A stretch of 64,000 nt of DNA from Saccostrea echinata (GCF_033153115.1 NW_026889750.1:20956001-21020000); one strand, 5' to 3'. Positions 33,801-61,586 are shown, counted from the stretch's first letter. The notes: a model not told the origin generated them from the sequence alone. Made by a program: numbers and translations.

Positions 33801-36800
33801 AAGAGTCTTGTAAAGTCAATGCCAGAGTGTATGCACTGTGGGAATTGTGAAGTAAATTTGCATTTACCACCAACTGACCATCTGAAAAGACAATGTGTTT
33901 GGAGCAAGGCTTATCATCGATTTAAAAAGATGGAAACCTAAGATGGATGCAAGCGTAAAATGGCGCTACCTGTAGCAAAAATTTGATAGATTTAAGGTTA
34001 TTGGTTGACCAATATTGATACATTTTAAACTTACTGTTCAGCAGAAGGAACGGACAATTTGACGGTGAGCACGACATGGTCAACCAAAGTTCGTCATTTT
34101 CTGGATCAGACGTGGATACTGTGAAGATGACGTCACCGATACTTGCTTGTTCAGCGTCCACTGTGACTTGCCCTGGATACAGTACCATTTTATTGATAAA
34201 ATAAAATATTATCTCAGACAAGCGCTTCAATAAGGCATGAATAGTGAAAACTAAATAAATATATTTTTTCAGTTGTAAGTCTGAATACTCTCAGTGAGTG
34301 GCATGTGTGCTTAATTTAGAAGCCAAAATATTTTAAGATCTATTGTGTTTTGTGAGTCTTTAATTTGGCACATCCTGTTTTTAAATTCCATGACAACTGG
34401 AATTAAATAAAAATCTCTTAAGCGTTTTTATACAGATAATGATTATACTAGTATATTGTTTACTTAATAGAAAACGTACAGAAAGTGTTGTGAAACTGAG
34501 GGGGTTCGTTCCGTTTGATGCTGACAGTGTAGGTTCCCGTTGCCGTATTTGTATTGTCCGAACACTCCACTTTTAAATTGTATGTGTTTTTTGTTTTATA
34601 TGCTAGCTGTGGCCAATCATACACAAATATGTCGTAGGCTGAAAAAATATATAGTGTTAAAAGTAATAATACTTTTATATATGAAGCAGTTATTAAGTGC
34701 TATTGGAGACAGAGAGAGAGAGAGATCGATCGAGAATCAACAAAGATGGTGTTCGACAAATATACATGTACAAACTGGAACGACTTGTAAAGTTTATTAA
34801 TTCGATTCAAATGCCAATATTTACTTTTAACGGCACTAGATGTCTGTCTGCAGTGAAATGGACCCTCGCTGGGGTTAGCTATATCACAGTACACAGGGTC
34901 ATTGGTGGAGGAGTCACTAGTCTGAACGGTGTACAGAGACTGCTGGGTTTCTGTGTCCTCCGACAGGTCCTTGTACTGGGCCCCAAGATTTGTAATGGAA
35001 AGAGGCTGTAAAATAAAGACGACAGGGTTAAGCTTGGTCTTGGCTTAACAGGGCCCGACATCTAAACACACACATTGTTACTACAACAAAATGCTCAGAA
35101 TATTCTGTTGATGTATTTTTTTTCTTAGACAATTGTTACTACACTGTAGATGTGTATCACTCTTACTGCATTAGCTACGATTATCGTCAGTGTCCTTGAG
35201 GACTGTCGCATGCACGCATCCATTATGTAGAACTCCATGGTGTACGTACCCTCTGGTATGTATGCCGAATCCGTTCTAACCTCGACTAAATAAAAGAAAA
35301 GATTGATTCTTTTTAGTGTCCCTTAACCTTAAAACAATCAATGGAATTTCTTACACAAAACATAATTCTGATAGATTGACTTAAGAGACTGCAAGAAGAA
35401 CGGTTCCACGAGTTTAAAAAATGCAGTGAAATGTGTACTTACGTGAGGAGGTATCCAAAACAAAGTACTTGCTGGAGTATAGTTTTTGTTCGATGAAAAG
35501 ATCAGTATTCAGTGTTGTTTGGTCTAAGTAGGAATAGGTCACATCCGTGACCTTGGTTCCGGATGGATTGGAGTCTGTTATAGTGACTGGTGTCGCGAAG
35601 GTCAGAGTCGGCGTGGTTCCTAATGAAATGAGGAAAAAAAATTATGAATATAATGTTTAATTGCTTTAAATTCTTTATATAGCATCCTCAGGGACAAATC
35701 AAAAATATCCTCTTGACAAAAACATCACATTTTAGAAACCTCTGACCTTGTCTAAATCACCTTGACCTTGATTCAGGATCATAATACAGCTTCAGGTCAT
35801 AAGCAAACTTACACAAACAATTCGTGTTACTATTCCATTTTGATTACATGTGACCTTGATCTTTCGCATATGACCTCTGTTTAGAGCCAGCTGATAAACT
35901 CTTTTTGTCAAACAAGAGATATCATTTCTCTATTAGAAAAAAATAACATTTAAAAACATTTTACCATGTCCTTATCCACATTAAAAGTGTAACCTAGCTC
36001 AGTTTGTTATTTAAATGAAACCAAATTTTTATTATGAGCTTGAAATCCATTTCCATCATAAAGATACAAAAACTTGACACTTCAGAGTCCCAACCTAATC
36101 CTCTTGCAAAAAGAAAAACATCATTCAGGGTAAAGCTATACGTCATCAAAAAACATTAAACAATTATGAAAAATAGACAGCGCTAGCCACTAGCCAGATA
36201 TATTTTATCCCAATAAGCTTCGTCTTCTGGGATACTCGTATTAAATGTAATAACTACACGCTTATCTAAAAAATACATGTAAATTAAAAAACGAACCTGT
36301 AACAATATTGGCCCGTACACCAAACAAGATGTTGTACTGGGCACCGGAGGTACTGGACCAGTTGATGATCTTCTCTTTCTTTATGAGTTCTGGTGCAATA
36401 CCAGTCATATACTTTGCCATGATGTAGTTTGATTCTGCCCCATAACCCAAAACTGCATCGCCGCTAAAATACCTTAATAAAGCATTTATTTATAAGTATA
36501 TATAATATTTATGAGTATTACTTTTTAAAAATAAATTCAAANNNNNNNNNNNNNNNNNNNNNNNNNNNNNNNNNNNNNNNNNNNNNNNNNNNNNNNNNNN
36601 NNNNNNNNNNNNNNNNNNNNNNNNNNNNNNNNNNNNNNNNNNNNNNNNNNNNNNNNNNNNNNNNNNNNNNNNNNNNNNTACTGTGTAAACTTAGAATAAA
36701 GTGGATATTTGTACCATCCGATGAAATCGCCGTTTTGAATCTGCAGTGTAGGGTTGGATGTTTGGGTTAAGGTTGATCCTACATGTGTAAAAATATTAAT

Positions 36801-43400: not shown

Positions 43401-46400
43401 AATCCGTGGACAAGAGTACTCTCTGCAAGTGATTGACACAGCTGGCCAGGTTAGAATTAAAAGAAAACATGTTTATTGTTTAACATGATTTTCTGTTTAA
43501 TTTAATAGTTTTACTGAATGTGTTTGAATTATTGAATATGAAAGATCTCGTTTTTTTTTAAAGTAGGTACTGGTACATTTTAGCTAACTGAAAATTAGCT
43601 GGTACTATTACATGTATACTATTACACTGGATAGCATTGGTTAATACTGTGGACATCTTAGGTTAAATGCAATAAATATTTGGCATAAGCAGTCATAATT
43701 TATAAACTTAATGCAGTGGATAAGATTACTGCTCGAAAATATTCTTTAGCAGTATAATTGGTAGCTCATTTAATCCTGTGTGCATCAAAGTTTATCATGT
43801 TTATCTTTAAGAGAGAATATAGTGACATTTAAAGTATTGACAGCTAATTAATATTTACAGTTAATTAGAGCTGACATTTTAAAGTAAGAACACATTTCCT
43901 AGAAAACACGTTGTAAACACATTTTCTTTTAACCTTGGTTATTTGTAGGATGAGTACTCCATTCTGCCCCAGTCTTATTTTGTGAATATAGATGGATATG
44001 TATTGGTATATTCTGTCAATTCTAGGAAAAGGTAAATGCACACACAAACACTCACACAAAGTATTTTGAAAGGGTTATATTGGAATCACCATGTTCTGTC
44101 TCTCTTTCTAGGTTCTTGTAAAGTGTACAGGCAGATTTACCTCAACGTTTTTCGTTGCATACGTGCAACATCATGATTTAAAATGTACTCTTGCTTTGTT
44201 TTGTATTTAAAAAAATAAACTGAAATAGAAAAACACATTAGCAGTGATTTATGCAATTTATTATAAATTTTGACTTCAAAATATTTTATTTTCATTTCTC
44301 TATTCTTGTAGAACAACACACACTTAACCCTTTGGGTACAGTCAATATTGTCCTTCACAAGTAGCTAAATTATCAAATTAACAGTATGCAAGTCTGTAAA
44401 TATTGTATAATATCAGTTAATAGAAAGGACCTTCTGTTGATAACAACATGTTATTTTCCACACATTTTTACTAAAATATCCATGTTTACAAAGTTTCCCT
44501 ACATGAATATTGAAATGAAGCATATTTAATATTTTTTAATTGGTATTTTACATTGTTGTAACTTAATTTCACTTGCTTTAGATCATTTCTATTTTTTTTT
44601 CTAGCTTTGAGGTGGTGAAGTTTGTCTATGATAAGCTCTTGGATATGAAAGGAACCATCAAGTATGTACCAAACAAAGTTTTGCACTGATTATATTCAAC
44701 CCATTTTTTGACAAATAGTTGCATCACTTTATGTAGGAATTCTTTACAAATAATAGTTTATTTCACAATTAAATGAATAGTAATAACTTTATGTGGTACA
44801 TTGTAATTATAAATATCAGGCTATAACAATGTCCAGAAAGTGAAGATTATTTGTACGTTCAGGTATTTCAAAATATTAGAATTGAAAAACTTTAGCTAAC
44901 TATCATGAAACTCCAACTATATACATCCACTTATACTTCACTTATTCTCTTCCAGTGGTGTACCAGTAGTATTGGTAGGAAACAAATGTGACTTAGCCAC
45001 AGAAAGGTATTATATTGATTGGTCTGAAAAAATCCATACAATTTTCATGTTCCAGTATAATTTCATTTCTCTTTATACTACTTTTTTTTTTTATGGTGGA
45101 TACATTTTTTTTTAAACTTCATGACTTGGGGTGTTATACAAAATTGTGGTGTTTGGAAGCTTTGAGTCAAGGCTTTGATCACATTTTTTGCAAGAAATAC
45201 ATACATTGGTGTTCTTTCTTCTTCTGGAAATAAGGGTACTCATAACTGTTTTAGTTGTAAACAAATTACTCAACNNNNNNNNNNNNNNNNNNNNNNNNNN
45301 NNNNNNNNNNNNNNNNNNNNNNNNNNNNNNNNNNNNNNNNNNNNNNNNNNNNNNNNNNNNNNNNNNNNNNNNNNNNNNNNNNNNNNNNNNNNNNNNNNNN
45401 NNNNNNNNNNNNNNNNNAATTTGCTAGCAAGAACATGTAAGTTATATCATCAAAGTTTAAAAATGATCTCAAGAAAGACATTGCTTTTATAGGGAAGTGA
45501 CTTTTGAAGAAGGAAAGAGATTGGCAGATAGCTGGAAGGTATCCTTTCTGGAAACATGTGCAAAGGAACATCATGTAAGTACATAATACATGTATATTAA
45601 CAGTGAGTTTAAGGTTCTTTAAAAAGAATGTTTAAATGGATTCTATTTCGCAAGTTTCACTGAAAAAAAATATGGCCTACATTTATATTCACCTCAAATG
45701 CTATTGACAGGCCAGTATTATTGAAAAATGTTGATTATAACTTTATAAATTTCCTTGATATCTGATAGTTATTTATTTTGTCAAATGGTTTATTACTGTC
45801 AGAGACCTATATACTAACGGGATAGGCAACTCCTTCAGCGCCATGTTTATTTACCCAAAGCGTCAAACACAAAACTGCAAGTTCTTCAAACTACGTTTTT
45901 TCCCAGTAAAAAGCTTGTTTTCTGATTAATGTAATCTGTTCTTTTTGTGTATCAGAATGGATATTTGATAAATTTTAAAGCACATATTATAAATAATTTA
46001 GATATTAAGTAAACAACCACCAAAATCGGCGATTTCTCGGAAATACGGCGGATCATGGGCACGCTCTGATTTTTAAATAAACGTAATTACTACTAAGATA
46101 AGGAGTAAAAACAGTGCTAATAACAAATCTTGAATAATTTTTTGATAGATAAATTAAGGTTTTATTCTGAAATAATTGATAGCAAAAAAGATATATTTAA
46201 TTAAAATTGACTTACGAAATCCCGCAGCTTACAAATTGCAAATGTGAAGAATTATAAATCATAAGATAATCATTGCATAAGATTTTATAAATCATACATT
46301 GCATAAGATATAAGGGAAATTGTGTTTTTGAATATAATTTCTTTTGTTGATCTAAGTCAAAAGTTGCTTGTACATGTAGTCTGGTGACTATCATCTGTTA

Positions 46401-50747: not shown

Positions 50748-53700
50748 TTACACAGTACCTGCTAAAGATAAAATATGTTACTATGGGTACTGCGCAAAAT
50801 TTCCTTAATATATGTAATTGCATCTAAAGGACAAAAACAAAAGGACAATGAAATTCAATCAAATAATCGTCGCTTAATCTCTCAAAAAAAAATGCTATAT
50901 ACCAACTTTATTTGGAAAAAAAAACTTGTTTTTGGTGATTTTATAACAATATACGAGTATAGGCATCATTTTGCTTTCGCCATATTTTTACCTTAACGTC
51001 TTGTCTTTTTTAAAGCTGTTTAGATCGATTAACTTGTTTACGGTGAAAAAAATTGCTATTTTTTACTTCTTCGAAGGTTAGCCGCACATGAAGGTAATTA
51101 ATTAACAGTTTAATGAAAAGATTTTAAATACAATAGTAAATACTCTTTTCTATCATTTAGTATAATTTACCAAGTTTATTTCGTCAAAGAAAAATGGCTG
51201 GCCTTGAATCATTTTTTGGAAGATTCAAACAGGCCTACTCACCACACTTGGAAACACCGCATGATTCAACATAGTGAGCATTCTCCTGAATGTAACAGAC
51301 TGGCTCATTTATGCCGTAGGGTGCGAAGTAATTCCTACAGTAGTTATTCCCGGGAAGAAAATCGTAGAACTTGGACCACATCAGGCACTGCTTCCCAGAG
51401 ACAGTAACACTAACCGTCCCATGGTAGTTTGAGCCATCCGCCTGAAAGCAGCTCTCATCTGTAATTAATCACAATAAGCACTGTTTCACAAAATAAAGGG
51501 TTAATTGCTAGCTTGGTGTATAAAATCACAATTATACATCTATATGGTATACGTGTCTGTACGAGTCGATTTATGATAGAAGGTAACTAGATGTATTTCC
51601 ATACTCAACACTCGTCGCTAATCCCCCCCCCCCCTCCCCGGCCTCTCCTTTCTCTTGGTGTTTCAGCTCCAGGTGCATCATAAATACTTGAGTATATATA
51701 TCAGTCGGAAAGAATAGGGACAGGTCCTGTCCACCATAGCATTAGATCATTAAATACACTGTATATAATTACAATTTTGAGAGTATGAAAGGGAAATTAC
51801 TTTTTTCAGATTAAGAAAGATGGCGTTTACCTGGAATCATGGCGGTGCTGTTTGTAGCTGTGGAACCGCTGCTTCCGGTATCAGACCCGTCACCTCCAAC
51901 ACAGAGGTTGTCTGAACACGTTGAACCACTTGGACAAGAACTGCATGGAGTTCCAGACACGTACGGTTTTTGGCCATTGTAATTTCCACTGATTCAAACA
52001 AGCATAATAATGACAGTTAACTTTCATAACAGTTTACATTAATTTAAAAAATACAGAGGAATATTAGTCTTTTGGTCAAGTCAATGAGTATGAATTCTGC
52101 ACAAAATTTTCCATCTAAAATTGCTAAATGTACATGTATCACTATGCATAAAAAAGAATTCTTTGATGCTTTTAGGCGTATGATTATGGTGGATTGACCT
52201 GGTTAGGGGCACTGGGATTCAGACTGCACGGTATCCCCTTACGAAGTTAATCTTTTATAGAAAATTAAAATTATATATTTCATACTTGTGCATGTAGCAG
52301 AGGAAAGTATTAGTTTCACTTACACACAACAGGGTCGAAGCAAAGAAAGTATAAATCTTTTGAGTTGATTATTTGTCTATCATAGCACAACAATTTAGAA
52401 ATAAATAACAAGTTTAAAAACTTCTCTGGGAAATGAAGTGGGTCGGTCACGTGATCAAATCCTGTGAAGGCCGAAGGCCTTCTCAGAAGATTTGATCACG
52501 TACCGACCCACTTCATTTCCCAGTGAAGTTTTTAAACTTGTTATTCATTACTTATATATACATTTGAGACGGACAATCGAATATAAATATTGCACTAACT
52601 GTTCGACGTAGATTTTTTACAAATTACGCAAGGTGTAAATCGGCTTGAAAAGCGGTTACGCTTCAAATTCATCTGGCAAAGGATTCTGTTTTGAAGGGAA
52701 TATTTTGTGAAAGGATACTTGTGATCAATTATAGTGAGCAAATTGGTGTCTTGGAATTTTTGTATTCATGAGAACCCATATTCGATGTTAAAAAAACACA
52801 AGAAAAACGTCCGATGTTTGTTAATAAAAATTTGGAGGAATTTCGGTCGGATAGGGATAGATGGAGACACTTTTCCGGACCAGTCAACTTGAAATCAAGT
52901 ATAAAATTTGATCAGAAACATAAAATCTACGATTTCAGTAAGGCATATTTATTATGAAATTGACAAGGAGACACTGGCGACAGCTTACACTGTTAAAACG
53001 ATCTCGATGATGGAGGTGTGCCTACCGAACTTCCAAAGTCAGCTGCATGTTTGTGACGTGATCGCATTGCATTGATATTTTCCAACAGATTTTCAAATTT
53101 ATTGTGAGTAAAGTTTAATGAAAAAAAAATATATAGCATTGAGAGGTCTAGCCTACAAGAAAAATAAGGGTAAACGTTGAGACTGCAGCTCAGACATGAA
53201 ACTTATAACACGTAGTTTTCTATTCTCTATATAAAATAGATCAAGAACTGTATTAAATACTCGTTTACATTGTAAATAAAATTATTATTATTTTACTTGC
53301 GTATTTTGTACATTTTTATACATTAAAAACATGCTATATTGCACTATAAGTAGAGTAAGTCTTTTTATGTAGATATTACTGCGCTGTGTGATTAGGTCAC
53401 GTAATGACCCATGACCTTCGAAAAACTTCATACAGGTATTTGCTCTCTGTATGTTTATACAATAGAGAGATACCACAAATGTATATACTATTAAATGAAA
53501 AGTTGGGCTAGATGAAGAGTCACCCCTCCCCCTTTCTGCTTCACAGGTAACGATATTTTAATACAGAGTATATTGGAAAAGTTTTGCCTGTGCCCACAGT
53601 TAGTCGAGATCTGCAAAGGACTCTAGGAGTAATTTCTACTCACCCCTCTCCATAATTGCAAACCACGATATTTCCACCATTAAAACTCGAAGGTAGGCCA

Positions 53701-55167
53701 TTAAATGTTTCACATGTGGCTGAAGCACATCCAACATACTCCGTGTGGGCCCAGGCCACCTTGAAAAATTCAATACATTTTAACCTCAGGTAATGGAATT
53801 TGATGTAAATTATTAGTACTTAAAACATAATGAAGGGATAGATAAGAAGAGGATTCTTGAGATTTACCTGAGTAAAATGCCCACACACACCGGAACATTC
53901 CATTGTGTCGTAGTTGTACACTGTCTTTTCGTGGTCCCAAGATTCCACAGCAGAACTTGGATTCACGGATTCTTGAAGAATACAGATTTGAATATTATCA
54001 TACATGTGTAATTGGTTAAATTAGTCTAAGTTCTCTTTTCGCCGAGAATCTACCTCAGTATAACAAACTGTTCAAGATTTATTGAAAATATATTGGAGTT
54101 GCTTAACTGTCTAATTCATTTTTAACTTATCTTAGATAGAAAGAGGATCCTTGCAATATTCATGTAAGCATATTTATTTAGTGTTATCAATTATTTATTG
54201 AGCTTACTGGATGACGTTGCAAACAGGTTTTCGCCAACATAGCTGAACTTCGATGTAAGAGCTTTTGTGTCCTCGGTTCTTTTGGAGTTGTGTGCCCAGA
54301 TACACTTCTGGGCATAATTTTGTGCAACCTGGGCTAATTCATTGCTCCATTTCTGTAAAATGATGAGGCATATTTCTCTTTTTTTTCAAAAAAAAACCCC
54401 AAATGGTTGAAAAAATGTAAAATTAAAAATATAATGTGCACATATTTTTGATGAATATTTGTGGACCCACGTTGTGTTTTAATATTTGCGATCAACTTTG
54501 TTTTGATGCTATCTTTTCCATATTCCTGTCATGCCTTGCAAAACGTATAAACCATATCCCCTCCCTTCGATACCACCAAGAGCAATTTACCAATTTTTTC
54601 ATGTTTGCTGCAGTTGGGCTGACAATTGACCTGGCTGTATTATGGGCATCTAGATACTCCTGTTGTTCTGATGTTTGCCGCCTTTTACGAAGAACTTTCT
54701 TCACGGTCTTAACTTTACCCGCTGGATTGGATATCTGAAAAGAAAGAATCAAATATATACAATATTATATACATACAAAGTATTTTAGGACTTTTTATCC
54801 CAATCTGAGTACTATTTTATATTAGGTTAAATTTTGTTATTTCATTTTAAAGTACTAGTCTTGCTTAAAATTTTGAATTAAGATCTTCCAGTATGAGCTC
54901 GAATGAACGCAGACTGACCAGATCATTAAAGGATATTTCTTTTAAGAAACGAATTATTTTTACGAATTTGAAAATTGATTCAGAATTAAGAAACATATTT
55001 ACCTCTAGATTTAAACCATGCAGTATTCTTGCATCTCGAACATGTACTTGCTTTTGGTCCTTAATTTTGATTGCAAATGGTTTCTCCTTGTTGAAGAACG
55101 TCTTAGAATAAGAGGTATCAAATATCAGAACCGTAAGGATAGTGGCAAAATTTATGACGAGCTTCAT
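50748..55167 (-). CDS. Secreted CAP (SCP/CRISP/GLIPR1-like) domain plus kringle domain protein, copy 1 (~353 aa)
   Basis: Exons 55167-55003, 54734-54591, 54352-54208, 53971-53868, 53759-53644, 51988-51831, 51458-51243 and 50761-50748 total 1062 nt. Signal peptide and RKRR. CAP motifs LDAHN, KWSNELA, GENL, GHFTQVAWA, VVCNYGEGGN, then a Cys hinge. Kringle CFQADGSNYHG..VTVSGKQCLMW..NYCRN..PVCY..ESCGVSKC. Confidence 0.92.
52404..52545. repeat. 142-bp foldback palindrome with gaaggcc-GAA-ggccttc tip
   Basis: aataacaagtttaaaaacttctctgggaaatgaagtgggtcggt...accgacccacttcatttcccagtgaagtttttaaacttgttatt, in intron 5 of CAP-kringle copy 1. Confidence 0.92.
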
Positions 55168-55217
55168 TTTAGCCGGAATTAAACCATGTGAAATAAATGC
55201 TTAGCATTCAGCTTTAG

Positions 55218-55226
55218 CTTTATATA
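55218..55226 (-). promoter_or_regulatory. Candidate TATA box of CAP-kringle copy 1
   Basis: TATATAAAG on the minus strand ~55 nt upstream of the ATG. A TATAAAG lies at the equivalent distance in copy 2. Confidence 0.5.
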
Positions 55227-57126
55227 ATTCGCTCGCCCATTAATATTTTGTAATTGATTTATTTGTCAATCGTGTTAAAACAGAAAAATGCTACTTATTG
55301 ATATTTTTTAATTAATATAGTACAGACAAAGAAGAAAATGAATTTTATACAAAATATCATTTTAATTGAACACCGCCGCTGCAATCTTTGAAAATATGGA
55401 GTTTCATGATGCATCTGCTACGATAATTATTTTCCAATTTGTTCAGCTGCTTAAAAAAACAGGAAAAGGGCAGATGAATGTCGACTCTGTTTTGTTTTTT
55501 TTAAAGTCCACATTTCATTATAACAATGATTTACATGTAATTATAAAGTTGGAAAAAAGTTGTCATAAGTTGTAAATAAATAATTAATACGACACTTTGA
55601 TTTTATTTTTATAGCAAGGGAGTGCATTTTTTATTCCTTCTTAACTATCTTAATTAATTATACATTGTCAAACTAACCATCAATACGTCAATCGGATTTA
55701 TTTTAAGATTTGTTAAACAATGCGGTCATCAGATTTTTTTCTTTTAGGTTAAATGACTGATTATATTCTGTCATAATACAACCTGCATTATTTTTCAATC
55801 ATGTACACCAGCAAATTGAAAATAATCCTTATGGTCATAACGCTTGATGTCCGAGTAGCCACCATCTCCCAGTTTAATCCCGATTTTTTTTTTAATTTAA
55901 GTTCCGTATATTATCCTAACATATAAAAAAAAACTTATATCCTAACATATAAAAAACTTACAAACGATTAAAAAATATTTTCTATTAAGTGTCTATACTA
56001 GCATATTTAAATATATATATAATTTTGTACTTTTAGGTAATTAGGTATAAGGAAGACACCTGATAGAAGAGAGTTGAAAAGATCGAGGGTTCTGATCTTG
56101 CACAAATAAAATATTTATAGTTTAATGTTTAAATTTTTAGCAAAGGGCAATACTATCCACAAAACTTTCTTATGTTACGTGTATGTGTAGTTTTCATACA
56201 TGTATTACTTTTTACTTTGTATATTTCCTGTCATTTGCTAAATGTTCAAAATTAGTGCTTTTGAAAACAGAAAGGCTTTCGTAGATGTGTTGTATCAAAA
56301 GGGTTATAAAACCTAATGATGTTTTCTGAAACACTGAATATTCCACTCCACTTTTATTTGGGACAAAATATTAAAAAAGAGAAAGGAATTTGACAAAAGG
56401 GGAAGAGCTGGTGTAGGCTTAGGAAACTAATTCCAATTTCTACACTCAGTCACGTTCTGACTGATCAGATATTCAAGCCTCATTTGGTCTGAACCAGCTC
56501 TTTTCTTTTGCTGCAGTCCTTTTTTTCAATACTTAGTATCACATAATGTAAAGTAGATAGAGAAATACTCAGAGTGACAGAAGCATCACTTGGTTTTACA
56601 ATTAATCGATAATACATATCTAAAATAGACTTTCTGTTCTCAGAAGCACTCATTTTGAGCAATAGTAAACGATAGAAAGTAAACTGAGTTTGTTACTATT
56701 ATTATTTTTTTATTATTTATTTTTAAAAAATTGTAATAAAATTTATTAATAATAATACTAATAATTAATAAATGACGTGTATGTTGTTTATGGAATATCT
56801 TAAATAAATGAATAAATATATGACAAAAAAATCTCGGTAATTTCTGGGAACACCGTATTTGTGGAATAGAGCTATATATGCATGAATACACTGTGAGTGT
56901 CCACGAAAAGCTATTCATAAGTTAAAAAGAACAAACTTAAGTTTATTTGCGGTTTAATTAATTTTTTATTCCAAGCAAACAGAAATGAGGAATATATAAA
57001 ATATATATAAAACAAAAGTGAGAAAAAGTTCAACCACAAGAAATTTGGGTAATATATTGTCAGTTTCCAATTCCAGTTTCGAGGGGCAGTCCATTTATTG
57101 CCTTCAGATCATAACAAATACGTTGT

Positions 57127-59556
57127 TCATTTCTTGCCTAAAATTAAAAAAAATGCAAAACAGATACAAAGAAATAATGTAAATCATTAATATGAAAGCA
57201 TTATCTGATTCATAATACTGTAATTTAAAGCAATTAAGATTATTCATTTCACATGAAGTTTTACCTCGTAAAGTTTTAATACATTTAACACATTTTAATA
57301 AAGAAACAGTAATAGTGTGTATGTATCATAAGTGCCGGTATATCAGAAATAAAATGCACCAAGAACATATCAATTTATGATGATATGTACCTAAATAAAT
57401 ACATACCTAATATGTACCTATGATACCTAATGCATCTGAAGCCAGAGGTTGCTCAAATTATCTACTATTACAAAAGAATTTTTCGAAAATGTTTTCAGAA
57501 TCCCAAACAGAGGCCATATTTTTTACTCTTATAAGGCAGGGGCATCTACATGTAGCAAAATTTCCCATTTATGCATATAAGACATCAGTCTTCAATATAC
57601 TGATTTTCAGTTAATTCATGGATTTTCTTAATATTTAATTAAGAAATATTATTATATACTATAATCGCTTTTAAAGTACATTTCAGTAAATTAGAGATTT
57701 TTGAAAATTTTGTCAGTAAGAGTTTTTTAAAAAGCAATTCTTAATTCTTACTGCACTTGGGGATCCCACAGGATTCTACGTAGTAAGTGCCGGGCCTCAT
57801 GTAACAAACAGGTTTGGTAAACCCGTAGGCAGCGAAGTAATTTCTGCAGTAGTTGTTGTTAGGAAGGGAGGAGAAGACACTAGACCAGACCAGACAAGTT
57901 TTCCCACTGACCGTTGTACTGACCGTACCCTGGTAGTTAGACCCATCACCCGTATAACAATCCTCATCTAAAAGCCATCAAAAAGATTTTTATATTATTT
58001 GTTACATTTATACTTCATCTTTAGACTTCTTTTACGTAAATTGAATGGAAAATAATCCAAGTGTAATAGAATATAATTATGTTATTGAATAGTGTATGCA
58101 AATAATTTTCGAAAGCTAAAAGAAAAAGGATTAAACATCATACTTTGAGTTTCACCGCTGCCGGTATTTGTTGACGTAGAACCACTACTTCCGGTATTAG
58201 ATGAGGAGCCAGATCCAGACGAAGACCCACTAGACCCAGAGGAAGACCCAGAACCATTATCATCGCTACCATCAGTGCAAAGGTTATTTGAACAAGAGTA
58301 ACCGCTAGGACAAGAACTGCAGGAAGTTCCAGACTTGTACGGCTTCTGGCCATTGTAATTACCTCTGCAAGAAGATGGTACATTTAAATACTATAATAAT
58401 CATACATACAATGTAATAATTTTTCTTTGTATTGAAAAAGAGAGAATATTATACCCGGGTCCATAATTGCAGACAACAATTGTTCCTCCGTTGAAGGAGC
58501 TGGATAATCCGGAAAAGGAAGAGCAAGTACTAGTGGCACATCCTACATACTCCGAGCTTGCCCAAGCTACCTGTAATTTATAGACTAGGAATATAATCCA
58601 ACAAACTACTCCCTATTAGACTTGAAACATGCACGGATCTATAGGAGGGTTGTGGGGATTTTCAGAGTCAAACATTTCTATGTAAAGTTGGACCCCACCC
58701 ATGAAACAAGGACCCTTCTCAAAAATAGTAAGAAGAGTCATGTTTCTGAAGAAATTGACTTAGAAAAGTGTTTTATCCTACACCCCACCCTACATCCCCA
58801 CACCCACCCCCACCCCTGACGAAATAAATTTTTCAGGTTTGGGGATGAAATTTTTTAACAAGTATAAAACATTCCAAGCTTGACATCTGTTAGAGTTGAT
58901 GTCTCCCTTCCCACCTTCACACCCGCTTCCAGAAAGAGATCAGGATCCGCGCCTGGGAAAGTAACTAACGTTCTCATACGTTTTGATTTGTTAAGTTAAA
59001 ATTACAAAGTATATCCACATTCGAAATAGAAATAGAATTTCTGAAACGACACTAGAATAGCAAAAATATCAGTCCTGAGGAATGAAAAACTTACGGATTT
59101 TAAATCCATAGGAACTAAATTGAGGAAAACGGGAATGATTCATGTAAAATTCCTCTTAAAATCAAACATTGGGTTGCAGACAAATTACATTCACCTGCAC
59201 ATGTGTATACCGTATTGGTTTAAAATTTTCATTATTCAAAATCCTCTTTTTATGATAACCGTATACCTGGGTGTAATGGCCACACACTCCCGCGCATGCT
59301 AGGTTACTGTATGTATAGTCACTCTTCTCGCTATCCCAGGATTCCACAGCAGAACTAGGATTAACATAACCTATAATATAAACATTGGTACAGGTATTAG
59401 TATCATTATATTCTTGTTATTATTTACTGAAAATACATAAAATATTGTATGTAAAGGATTTTTAAAAATTAAAACAATACTAAAGGAGTATTCAAGGTTT
59501 CAAAGATACAACATTTCCATGAGCATACGTCTAATGTTAGTCGTCAATAAAAGAGT

Positions 59557-59638
<82 letters not shown>

Positions 59639-61586
59639 CATTATTCCTCAAATTACTAATGTAATGTTGAATATTACATTATATTATAGATATATTGTTA
59701 GATTTTCTCAAAGCACAGAACAATTGCATGGATTTAAAATTATTCTCACTTCTGGAGGTGACGTAGAGATTCTCGCCTACATAGCTGAACTGAGAGGTCA
59801 GGGCCTTAGTCTCCGTAGTTCGTGCCGAATTATGGCCCCATATGCATTTGTTGGCGTAGTTCTGAGCAACTTGGGCTAACTCATTACTCCATTTCTTTAA
59901 GACAGAGTTAGTTTTGTTTTATTTTTTAAACTTGCTCCATAAAAATTGCAAATAATCGTAAGTAATTGAAAATTTTAATAGCGTACATTGCACTTAAAGT
60001 AAAAGATTTAAGTCTTGGTTATCAAAGGGTAACTTCTATTGCAATTCACAGATTTTCAATAGAGAAACTTATGTGGGTTTTGTTCCTTTTCAAAATTTAA
60101 AATTTTGAATTTTTAATGATATCCAGACTCCTACCATCTTTCTCATATTTGAGGCGGTAGGGCTGACAATGGATCTTGCATCGTTATGAGCGTCTAGGAA
60201 TTCTTGTTCATCAGAATTGCTCTGTCGCTTCTGTCTTGCACTTCTGGCGATTCTAACCTGACCTTTGGGATTGGATATCTAAAAAAAGAAATTCTTAAGC
60301 AACTCAGAAAAGATCATCAAATCATAATTAATTTCATACAGGTAGAATTTCTTTTTGTTTGTCAGCAAGAATGTCTGAATACGCTACTAGCACTTTATCA
60401 AAGAATGGACTTCATAACTGACACAAAGTAATACATGTAACATGTACATGTAAGTTTAAACATGTAGCTTTTTTGGAGTGATGTAAATATTGAATTTATG
60501 GGAGGAGGGAAGTAGAGAAGCAGTCTTAAGTACTCAAATGTACGATTTTTTCAAAAAAGCGAGAGATGTTGTGAAGGTACTTGACCCGTACAATTTACTT
60601 TGTAGTACATAGTAGCTCCCCTTTTTGAAACAAATAACATCCTTAATTCATTAAGACATGCTATACAAACTATATCTTTTCACAAATTTTTTTTTAGAAT
60701 TGAGCACTGTTTTCTCTAGAATTCCACATAACTTTTAACTTATAAGTTCTTAGCCTGTTTTGAATAAGATCCGGTCCTCTATATTTGACCAAAAATGTTT
60801 TCATTTGGATTTGAATGAGGACCTCTCCAGAGCGACAGATCTGTAGAAACTACATTTCGTCTCATACATTTTGAATTAAAGCATGCTGATATACATGCAA
60901 ATTGTTTGCATGGAAATACTTCACAAGTACACTGTACACATATATACGGTACTAACATCTTTCTGTATCTTCTGATAAGAAAGTTTCTCAAACGCAATGC
61001 ATTTTCTATACACAAACGCAGCCGGGAAACAGTCCCATTTGAAACCTCAATCTAAAGCATTTAAGGTGAAATTTACGTTTGAATAAGAAGATTTTAGTAA
61101 AATCATGACAACGGCTAAAAAGACACGTGGAAGACATGTCAGCGGGAATAGTACTCAGTACCAAAAATTTCCGTGAAAAGTAAATTCATAGCAAACTAGT
61201 GACATTAAGGCTGTAATATGTGCAAAACGGGAAGCAATTAAGAACTACAAAGTAAAGCATCAACCAAGAGTAAAAAACTTAAATAAAATTACGAAATTCG
61301 TCATATATTTTGTTTGCAATTACAATAACACCAAAAATAACATTTTTTCATCATATTAATGAACAAGAAATTCAAGTTTGTCATAGTTAAAGTTAATATG
61401 CATATTAATCTATTTGTTAAATTCAGATGTTAATAATTTTTTTTAAGTTACCTCGAGACCGCGTAAATCTTCTGCAAGTTTGTCAAGCTCTCGCTTTTCA
61501 TCCCATTCAACAGGAAGCTGGAATTTCCTTGCCACCAGGATATCTGTCAAAGACAAGCATATTACCAAAACCAGAAGGCCCTGCAT
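57127..61586 (-). CDS. Secreted CAP plus kringle protein, tandem copy 2 (~363 aa)
   Basis: Exons 61586-61452, 60278-60135, 59894-59750, 59370-59267, 58570-58455, 58364-58144, 57967-57752 and 57137-57127 total 1092 nt. Exons 2-5 and 7 are the same length as in copy 1. RQKR, GENL, GHYTQVAWA, VVCNYGPGGN, Gly/Ser linker, kringle CYTGDGSNYQG..SGKTCLVW..NYCRN..PVCY..ESCGIPKC. Confidence 0.92.
58628..58955. mobile_element. MITE with CA(T/G)G..CCTG termini and probable 5-bp TSD
   Basis: catgcacggatct / ggatccgcgcctg. Flanks tgaaa / ggaaa. Lies in intron 4 of CAP-kringle copy 2; the paralogous intron is much shorter. Confidence 0.5.
59560..59634. repeat. (TA)n microsatellite
   Basis: ~75 bp of uninterrupted AT repeat. 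Confidence 0.98.

Follow-up and report, generated by a model that had tools for sequence, protein, structure and literature searches.

Proteins of the CAP superfamily are largely defined by the module that stands behind the CAP domain, namely, a channel-blocking ICR in the CRISPs, an LCCL domain in CRISPLD and a membrane anchor in GLIPR1. In vertebrate PI15 and R3HDML, which are secreted CAP proteins, an N-terminal propeptide closes in a polybasic, furin-type convertase site that precedes the CAP domain. Kringles keep other company, and in the classical kringle proteins (plasminogen, HGF, apolipoprotein(a), prothrombin, ROR1/2 and Kremen) the partner is a protease, a receptor kinase or WSC/CUB. 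Here we describe a 64,000-nucleotide stretch of the genome of the oyster Saccostrea echinata (hereafter the window, C1:20956001-21020000 in the analysed assembly of 923 Mb and 425 contigs), which contains two genes, A (50748-55179, minus strand) and B (57127-61586, minus strand), whose predicted products place a kringle behind a CAP domain, an undescribed combination. We give a probability of about 0.8 to the reading that A and B are old tandem paralogues of an oyster-restricted family, each of which encodes a secreted two-module protein.

Compared with human GLIPR1 (3q2r/3q2u), with which they share the CAP tetrad, the four-Cys hinge (PY..G..C..CP....C..NLC) and ~40-42% identity, the oyster proteins run into a Gly/Ser linker and a kringle rather than into a membrane anchor, and they carry in addition a pro-region with a dibasic site. 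The CRISPs (pseudecin, 2ddb; triflin, 1wvr; natrin, 1xta) resemble them as secreted CAP proteins with a hinge and a small disulfide-rich C-terminal module (E-values of 1e-28 to 1e-25), but have an ICR/Crisp (ShKT-like) module directly past the hinge, where the oyster proteins have a long disordered linker and a kringle. PI15 and R3HDML, whose propeptide and convertase site are arranged as in the oyster pair and provide a precedent for it, lack a kringle; their names were transferred to several of the oyster proteins by NCBI, whereas the best solved relative of the latter is GLIPR1. Finally, the classical kringle proteins have in common with the oyster pair the fold, the six-Cys pattern, the NYCRN core and a single symmetric phase-1 exon, whereas the oyster kringle is ~9-12 residues shorter, is without the lysine-binding residues and has a CAP domain as its partner.

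Gene models and transcripts of the tandem pair

The sequence around the gene pair is AT-rich animal DNA (~32% G+C), and its minus-strand stop-to-stop translation gave two collinear series of short open stretches with canonical splice signals. The window also contains runs of N, at 36542-36678 and 45275-45417. These correspond to two genes of eight exons apiece, arranged head to tail with a gap of ~1.95 kb. Both reading frames are intact, intron phases match between the genes, and the lengths of exons 2-5 and 7 are equal (144, 145, 104, 116 and 216 nucleotides, respectively). The joined translations, of 352 residues for A and 363 for B, are 62% identical. In both products the order is hydrophobic leader (read as a signal peptide), pro-region, GLIPR1-type CAP domain, hinge, Gly/Ser/Thr/Asp linker and short kringle, with a tail of 2-3 residues past the last Cys (...KCGTV in A and ...KCSKK in B).

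The two models were established in different ways, since RNA junctions cover gene A and the model of gene B rests on its identity to a public protein. The joined exons of gene A were used for translation, identity, the comparison of nonsynonymous and synonymous differences (pN and pS) and the tree, domain searches were made exon by exon, and gene B was searched through its public counterpart, P0151. First, in run X1 a single contig of 1060 nucleotides joins exons 1-7 of gene A (from 55179 to 51243) with 0-1 mismatches per piece, and the skipped parts all end in CT..AC, that is, GT..AG on the minus strand. The junction between exons 6 and 7 (hinge to kringle, 51831/51458), which the original prediction had singled out as the one that transcripts must contain, is present in three runs (X1, X3 and X4), and that between exons 7 and 8 (51243 to 50758) in run X2; none of the run contigs ends exon 6 elsewhere. 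The four runs, obtained by an index search, contain 0.10-0.23 of the sampled words from the 4.6 kb of gene A, the upper share being about the exon fraction of that length, and they were taken as RNA because their contigs are spliced. Gene A is transcribed and spliced as modelled. A chimeric assembly of two genes was also considered, but junctions that agree across several runs, together with orthologous mRNAs, rule it out. Second, the joined translation of gene B is identical over all 363 residues to P0151, the RefSeq "peptidase inhibitor 15-like [Saccostrea echinata]", which fixes its splice sites, including the donor of exon 6 and the last exon.

Based on the X1 contig and the P0151 identity, the gene pair is real and spliced as had been proposed. 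The elements of both models lay where they had been placed, except that the start of the last exon of gene A had to be corrected to 50758 and the end of the gene B product to ...KCSKK. A tandem TAG-CAG acceptor (50759-50764) stands ahead of this exon; the sole RNA contig there uses CAG, which gives the corrected start, and the TAG choice would give ...KCAGTV. The exons are listed below, with the evidence for each; a slash inside a motif marks the predicted cut, and inside a codon the splice position.

54591..54734, 55003..55179 and all other coordinates are counted in the window, and every exon is on the minus strand.
55003..55179, minus: gene A exon 1, 5' untranslated region, ATG at 55167, signal peptide and start of the pro-region; coding part 55003-55167 (X1 contig, GT donor)
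54591..54734, minus: gene A exon 2, LEISNPxGxV motif, RKRR/Q (54678-54689) and start of the CAP domain at HNxxR (RNA junctions 54734/55003 and 54352/54591)
54208..54352, minus: gene A exon 3, CAP domain with the His of WAHN and the Glu of GENL (PF00188 at 22.5 bits, spliced contig)
53868..53971, minus: gene A exon 4, CAP domain with the Glu of WDHE and the His of GHFTQ (RNA junctions, motifs)
53644..53759, minus: gene A exon 5, end of the CAP domain, CNYGEGGN (PF00188 at 18.5 bits; junction 51988/53644 in X1 and X2)
51831..51988, minus: gene A exon 6, four-Cys hinge and Gly/Ser/Thr linker, ending in phase 1 (junction 51458/51831 in X1, X3 and X4; hinge alignment to 3q2r via gene B)
51243..51458, minus: gene A exon 7, kringle, 216 nucleotides, phase 1-1 (PF00051 at 46.3 bits; plasminogen, E 2.2e-13; RNA junctions on both sides)
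50748..50758, minus: gene A exon 8, coding part G/GT ACT GTG TAA, end GTV; the 3' untranslated region runs below 50748 (joint 50758/51243 in one X2 contig)
61452..61586, minus: gene B exon 1, ATG at 61586, signal peptide and pro-region (joined model identical to P0151)
60135..60278, minus: gene B exon 2, pro-region motif, RQKR/Q (60225-60236) and start of the CAP domain (P0151 identity)
59750..59894, minus: gene B exon 3, CAP domain (PF00188 at 21.1 bits, P0151 identity)
59267..59370, minus: gene B exon 4, CAP domain (P0151 identity)
58455..58570, minus: gene B exon 5, end of the CAP domain (PF00188 at 18.5 bits, P0151 identity)
58144..58364, minus: gene B exon 6, hinge and longer Gly/Ser linker, ending in phase 1 (donor set by P0151 identity; linker with a predicted local distance difference test score, pLDDT, below 50)
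57752..57967, minus: gene B exon 7, kringle, 216 nucleotides, phase 1-1 (PF00051 at 44.4 bits, pLDDT ~89-95, Foldseek match 8tce_A)
57127..57137, minus: gene B exon 8, coding part A/GC AAG AAA TGA, end SKK (P0151 identity)

Three further observations concern the introns and the run contigs. A long microsatellite of the (TA)n type occupies part of intron 3 of gene B (59503-59678), and reads YIYIYI in each of the three frames of the minus strand. A repeat in intron 5 of gene A (52394-53500), outside the coding gene, is matched in every one of the four runs by numerous RNA contigs that are divergent and of high depth; within it lies a 51-nucleotide inverted repeat (52397-52447 and 52502-52552, 94% complementary, 54 nucleotides apart), which looks like a miniature inverted-repeat transposable element. 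In run X4, where exons 1-5 of gene A have zero depth, one contig joins exons 6-7 at 51988 to 30 nucleotides that are not found in the window. These 30 nucleotides have 61 copies in the genome, often paired ~7.8 kb apart, with a look of long terminal repeats, and the join may stem from the polymorphic insertion of an element, from an alternative 5' end or from a chimeric assembly.

CAP domain, pro-region and kringle

The CAP domain is recognised by profile, motif and fold. Single CAP exons score 18-22 bits against PF00188 (22.5 for exon 3 of A, 21.1 for exon 3 of B and 18.5 for exon 5 of each), P0012, an orthologue of full length, reaches 72.5 bits where the cut-off is 21.1, and P0151 carries a precomputed PF00188 annotation. 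The signatures HNxxR, G[EQ]N[ILV], GH[FY]TQ..W and CNY..GN are readable in both genes. The His/Glu/Glu/His tetrad, which had been predicted to persist in both copies, is indeed retained (WAHN in A and WGHN in B, GENL in both, WDHE and WDSE, GHFTQ and GHYTQ), corresponds to H114, E134, E156 and H173 of P0151, and is unchanged in 12 of 12 aligned family members. Among solved structures human GLIPR1 (3q2r) is the top match to residues 72-250 of gene B (E 2.9e-43), in an alignment that spans the hinge Cys, and snake-venom CRISPs come next. In an AlphaFold2 model of gene B, built on a 44-row alignment, the CAP domain (residues 70-250) has pLDDT above 90; by Foldseek it matches GLIPR1 with a template modelling (TM) score of 0.89 and a root-mean-square deviation of ~2 Å, and it shows the alpha-beta-alpha sandwich fold. 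The hinge has the four-Cys pattern of GLIPR1 and the CRISPs. Beyond it, the resemblance to either of them ends: instead of a GLIPR1-type C-terminal transmembrane anchor, a hydrophilic linker and the kringle follow, and no Crisp (PF08562) or LCCL domain was found, the Pfam scan of P0012 giving CAP and Kringle only. The linker, rich in Gly, Ser, Thr and Asp, is 30-45 residues long, longer in gene B, and disordered in the model (residues 252-287, pLDDT below 50).

Ahead of the CAP domain lies a pro-region of ~45-55 residues with a conserved motif, LE(I/L)SNPxGxV, and model confidence of 50-72. The furin-type sites reported by the original prediction are present, RKRR/Q at 54678-54689 in A and RQKR/Q at 60225-60236 in B; both conform to the R-x-K/R-R motif of convertase substrates, and both occupy the same alignment position, 8-10 residues ahead of the HNxxR helix. 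Convertase cleavage at this dibasic site is our inference from the sequence, and would release the pro-region from the mature protein.

Alternatively, the N-terminal extension may stay uncut, so that its 45-55 residues would remain on the mature protein as a domain or regulatory arm. The conserved motif just named, together with a predicted helix (30-41) and short strands, would suit such a role, and two Magallana-type members have TQKR or TEKR at the site, that is, K-R without the P4 Arg of the furin consensus. Against this, the K/R-R pair is fixed at that position in every oyster member, including paralogues that carry IPT/TIG exons in place of the kringle; site and extension are both absent from the scallop and mussel CAP homologues; and the site falls within a stretch of low pLDDT, probably exposed, just ahead of the first CAP helix. 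We consider an uncut extension unlikely, and prefer cleavage at the dibasic site.

The C-terminal module is a true kringle on its own phase 1-1 exon, in agreement with the original prediction. The 216-nucleotide exon is symmetric, with phase 1 at each end in both genes, and aligns with positions 1-79 of the 79 of PF00051 at 46.3 bits in A and 44.4 bits in B (cut-off 34.3); the kringle of P0012, from Saccostrea cucullata, falls under this cut-off in a whole-protein scan (28.8 bits). From the first to the sixth Cys it measures 69 residues, compared with ~78 in classical kringles. In a pairwise HMMER alignment its six Cys line up with those of a plasminogen kringle. Plasminogen is the closest solved relative (E 2.2e-13), and HGF, apolipoprotein(a), prothrombin and ROR also align. 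The AlphaFold2 model of gene B gives the kringle pLDDT of ~89-95, and Foldseek matches this module to Lp(a) KIV8 (8tce_A, TM score 0.67) and also to the amino-terminal fragment of uPA.

The alignment with plasminogen kringle 4 bears on the ligand. About 12 residues are absent between the second and third Cys, NYCRNPDAD becomes NYCRNYFAPYG, PWC becomes PVC and RWEYC becomes YVESC. Hence YFAPYG stands in place of the Asp-x-Asp centre, Val in place of the Trp of PWC, and Tyr-Val in place of the Arg-Trp preceding the fifth Cys. We take the altered positions to be the anionic, cationic and aromatic parts of the plasminogen lysine-binding site, and the deleted loop of ~12 residues to carry the cationic centre. 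Looking for the Asp-x-Asp pair, a cationic Lys/Arg and an aromatic trough, we found every aligned position substituted or deleted. A plasminogen-like lysine ligand seems unlikely for the oyster kringle, since the residues of the pocket are substituted or gone. The proposal that the kringle nevertheless retains lysine binding, and would so anchor the CAP domain on lysine-exposing surfaces (a clot, a matrix or a surface protein of a microbe), can appeal to a true kringle by profile and fold, with the NYCRN core and six Cys retained; given that the anionic and aromatic positions are substituted and the presumed cationic-centre loop deleted, we hold it to be very improbable.

Both modules are maintained by selection. 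Between A and B, pN is 0.24 and pS 0.79 in the kringle exon, and for the CAP exons the values are 0.20 and 0.89, respectively. With synonymous sites at saturation and change at the amino-acid level held in check, the pattern is one of purifying selection on CAP and kringle alike.

Family distribution and origin of the fusion

The CAP-kringle family is already in public databases, unrecognised under misleading automatic names. An HMMER search with the kringle exon, over 1.84 billion representatives, returned beyond multi-kringle proteins a set of single-kringle matches at 63-67% identity, including the full-length P0012 (354 residues); a word search with P0012 in turn returned P0151. Precomputed PF00188 and PF00051 annotations coincide in S. 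cucullata, S. echinata, Ostrea edulis (two proteins, a pair that sits on one chromosome-sized contig) and Crassostrea virginica. A cluster look-up adds a second C. virginica gene, Magallana gigas and C. angulata, which brings the family to at least six oyster species in four genera, and several mRNA-sized Logan contigs also encode CAP and kringle together. The automatic names of these proteins are PI15-like, PI16-like, R3HDML-like, GLIPR1-like protein 1, CRISPLD1-like and 'Kringle domain-containing protein'. An old M. gigas fragment, K1QHL8 (P0008), in which exon 2 is joined to the kringle exon, is named 'Plasminogen', and the annotated isoform X1 of C. virginica (P0158) translates the kringle exon in the wrong frame.

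Outside oysters, CAP with kringle was not found by word searches, including a kringle-only query, or by HMMER among the matches listed. The nearest scallop, mussel and gastropod homologues are CAP-only. In the ESM Atlas there was no CAP and kringle cluster of at least 50 members, the nearest large clusters being CAP-only, CAP with LCCL or CAP with Crisp. Two more divergent metagenome kringles, P0033 and P0048, are of the same short type, and a metagenome scan with P0033 returned nothing confirmed as CAP-kringle outside oysters. Restriction to the Ostreidae, as judged from these searches, is the current picture and not a proof. In the full-text literature, searched for CAP-kringle proteins and for oyster PI15- or GLIPR1-like proteins with a kringle, no description was found: the only co-mention of CAP and kringle concerns PMEL, and a paper on ark-clam CRISP has no kringle. 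For R3HDML with furin, the literature gave papers on furin in general only. Thus, the earlier claim that no CAP-kringle family has been characterised holds as far as these literature searches go, but the architecture itself is annotated in at least six oyster species, and gene B is a RefSeq protein.

In a maximum-likelihood tree, whose vertebrate content is GLIPR1 only, gene A groups with P0154 of O. edulis and P0156 of C. virginica (support 89/96), Magallana-type members form a second group (support 97/98), and gene B falls with S. cucullata, O. edulis P0152 and C. virginica P0234 in a loosely resolved B-type set. Since O. edulis and C. virginica each have an orthologue of the A type and one of the B type, the tandem duplication took place, by this tree, before Saccostrea, Ostrea and Crassostrea separated. 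Uniting every kringle-bearing member in one clade is not rejected (P value of the approximately unbiased test, 0.289), and a single fusion origin is not demonstrated, because the CAP-IPT/TIG pair lies inside a polytomy.

That the kringle is an optional 3' module, with a CAP-hinge protein as the main product and the kringle form as a minor isoform or a read-through into a kringle mini-gene, is hardly credible: the X1 and X4 contigs do end precisely at the donor of exon 7 (51243), exon 8 was seen in one run only and the C. virginica isoform X1 has its kringle exon out of frame, but the exon 6-7 junction recurs in three runs with no alternative exon 6 end among them, exon 6 closes in phase 1 with no stop codon, mRNA-sized contigs of several species join CAP to kringle, and the kringle exon has been kept, under purifying selection, since before the oyster genera diverged.

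The closest CAP paralogues in S. echinata suggest how the kringle was acquired by the genes at this locus. They lie at C43 (~1667000-1677400, minus strand) and C56 (~9217000-9226000, plus strand), and are built like A and B in the pro-region with its motif and dibasic site, in the exons for CAP and hinge and in the phase-1 intron, with IPT/TIG exons where A and B have the kringle. Their downstream exons are collinear with the IPT/TIG part of M. gigas A0A8W8L0R5 (P0159); at C43 the hinge exon ends in phase 1, as in A and B, and the next exon completes the codon. As read from genome exons, a single CAP-IPT/TIG transcript at C43 and C56 is putative. Within the S. echinata genome, the kringle type of genes A and B occurs at their own two loci only, although the genome holds at least 150 kringle exons matching PF00051, many of them in dense arrays. 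Exon shuffling, in which a 1-1 kringle exon would have been placed in the phase-1 intron behind the hinge exon, is well supported, because the paralogues put IPT/TIG exons in that same intron and because the pool of kringle exons is so large; the exon-shuffled origin first proposed for the pair is borne out to this extent, and a symmetric exon set into such an intron is its classical mark. Donor module pool and recipient intron are both visible in one genome. Examples of the arrays are C53:18-186504, C2:1458-33519, C9:45.6-45.8 Mb, C12:20.3-20.5 Mb and C52:6.5-7.1 Mb, and the two CAP-linked kringles rank among those most divergent from the PF00051 profile.

A proposed extracellular role

The proposed course of events is as follows. 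The protein would enter the secretory pathway and lose its leader, and a furin-like proprotein convertase would cut past the dibasic site in the trans-Golgi. This cleavage would free a mature protein whose N-terminal Gln, located shortly ahead of the first helix of the CAP domain, could cyclise to pyroglutamate. Once secreted, the protein may act as a bimodular ligand of the CRISP type, in which the CAP domain would act or bind through its conserved divalent-cation cleft, and the kringle, on its flexible tether, would dock the whole to a protein or matrix partner, in place of an ICR/ShKT module or membrane anchor. The idea of the kringle as a targeting module, put forward at the outset, is plausible; activation by the cut, and a part in immunity, reproduction or the shell matrix, which were suggested with it, are conjecture. 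Its partner would be something other than a plasminogen-type C-terminal lysine ligand, because the residues of the lysine pocket are absent. Conservation under purifying selection across the oyster family argues for a stable role in the extracellular space, endogenous or housekeeping, rather than for a fast-evolving arms race.

Several points weigh against this reading, in addition to the P4 substitutions in the two Magallana-type members. First, at the protein level, the call of the signal peptide relies on visual inspection and on a predicted helix, the cut at the dibasic site is itself a prediction, and P1', although mostly Gln, is Gly or Glu in three members. The missing lysine pocket derives from one pairwise HMMER alignment and from the residue numbering used for plasminogen. 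Second, at the level of the transcript, the joint of exons 7 and 8 of gene A is one low-depth contig in a single run, the RNA nature of the runs was guessed by the tool, the spliced form being itself the evidence, and the product of gene A was not found in the protein collection by two word searches. Third, the restriction to oysters comes from word-based searches and one HMMER search, among the matches listed (150 representatives).

It is tempting to go further, and to see in these proteins a new functional class of CRISP-like ligand, in which a minimal, non-lysine kringle replaces the ICR/ShKT module or the anchor for an oyster-specific recognition task, be it in matrix or cement, in mucosal defence or between gametes, and in which the pro-region masks the CAP cleft until it is cleaved; this is speculative, and we regard it as quite improbable as it stands. 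The secreted, proteolytically matured two-module protein is the reading that we retain.

The finding bears on protein evolution, and its practical importance is limited until a tissue, ligand or phenotype is known. The names under which these proteins are now filed conceal a CAP-kringle family, and the locus provides a tidy natural case of proteins evolving by modules, in a genome whose pool of kringle exons is very large. The oyster CAP-kringle proteins are a real, lineage-restricted variant of the CAP superfamily, namely, an uncharacterised secreted family and a clean case of exon shuffling.

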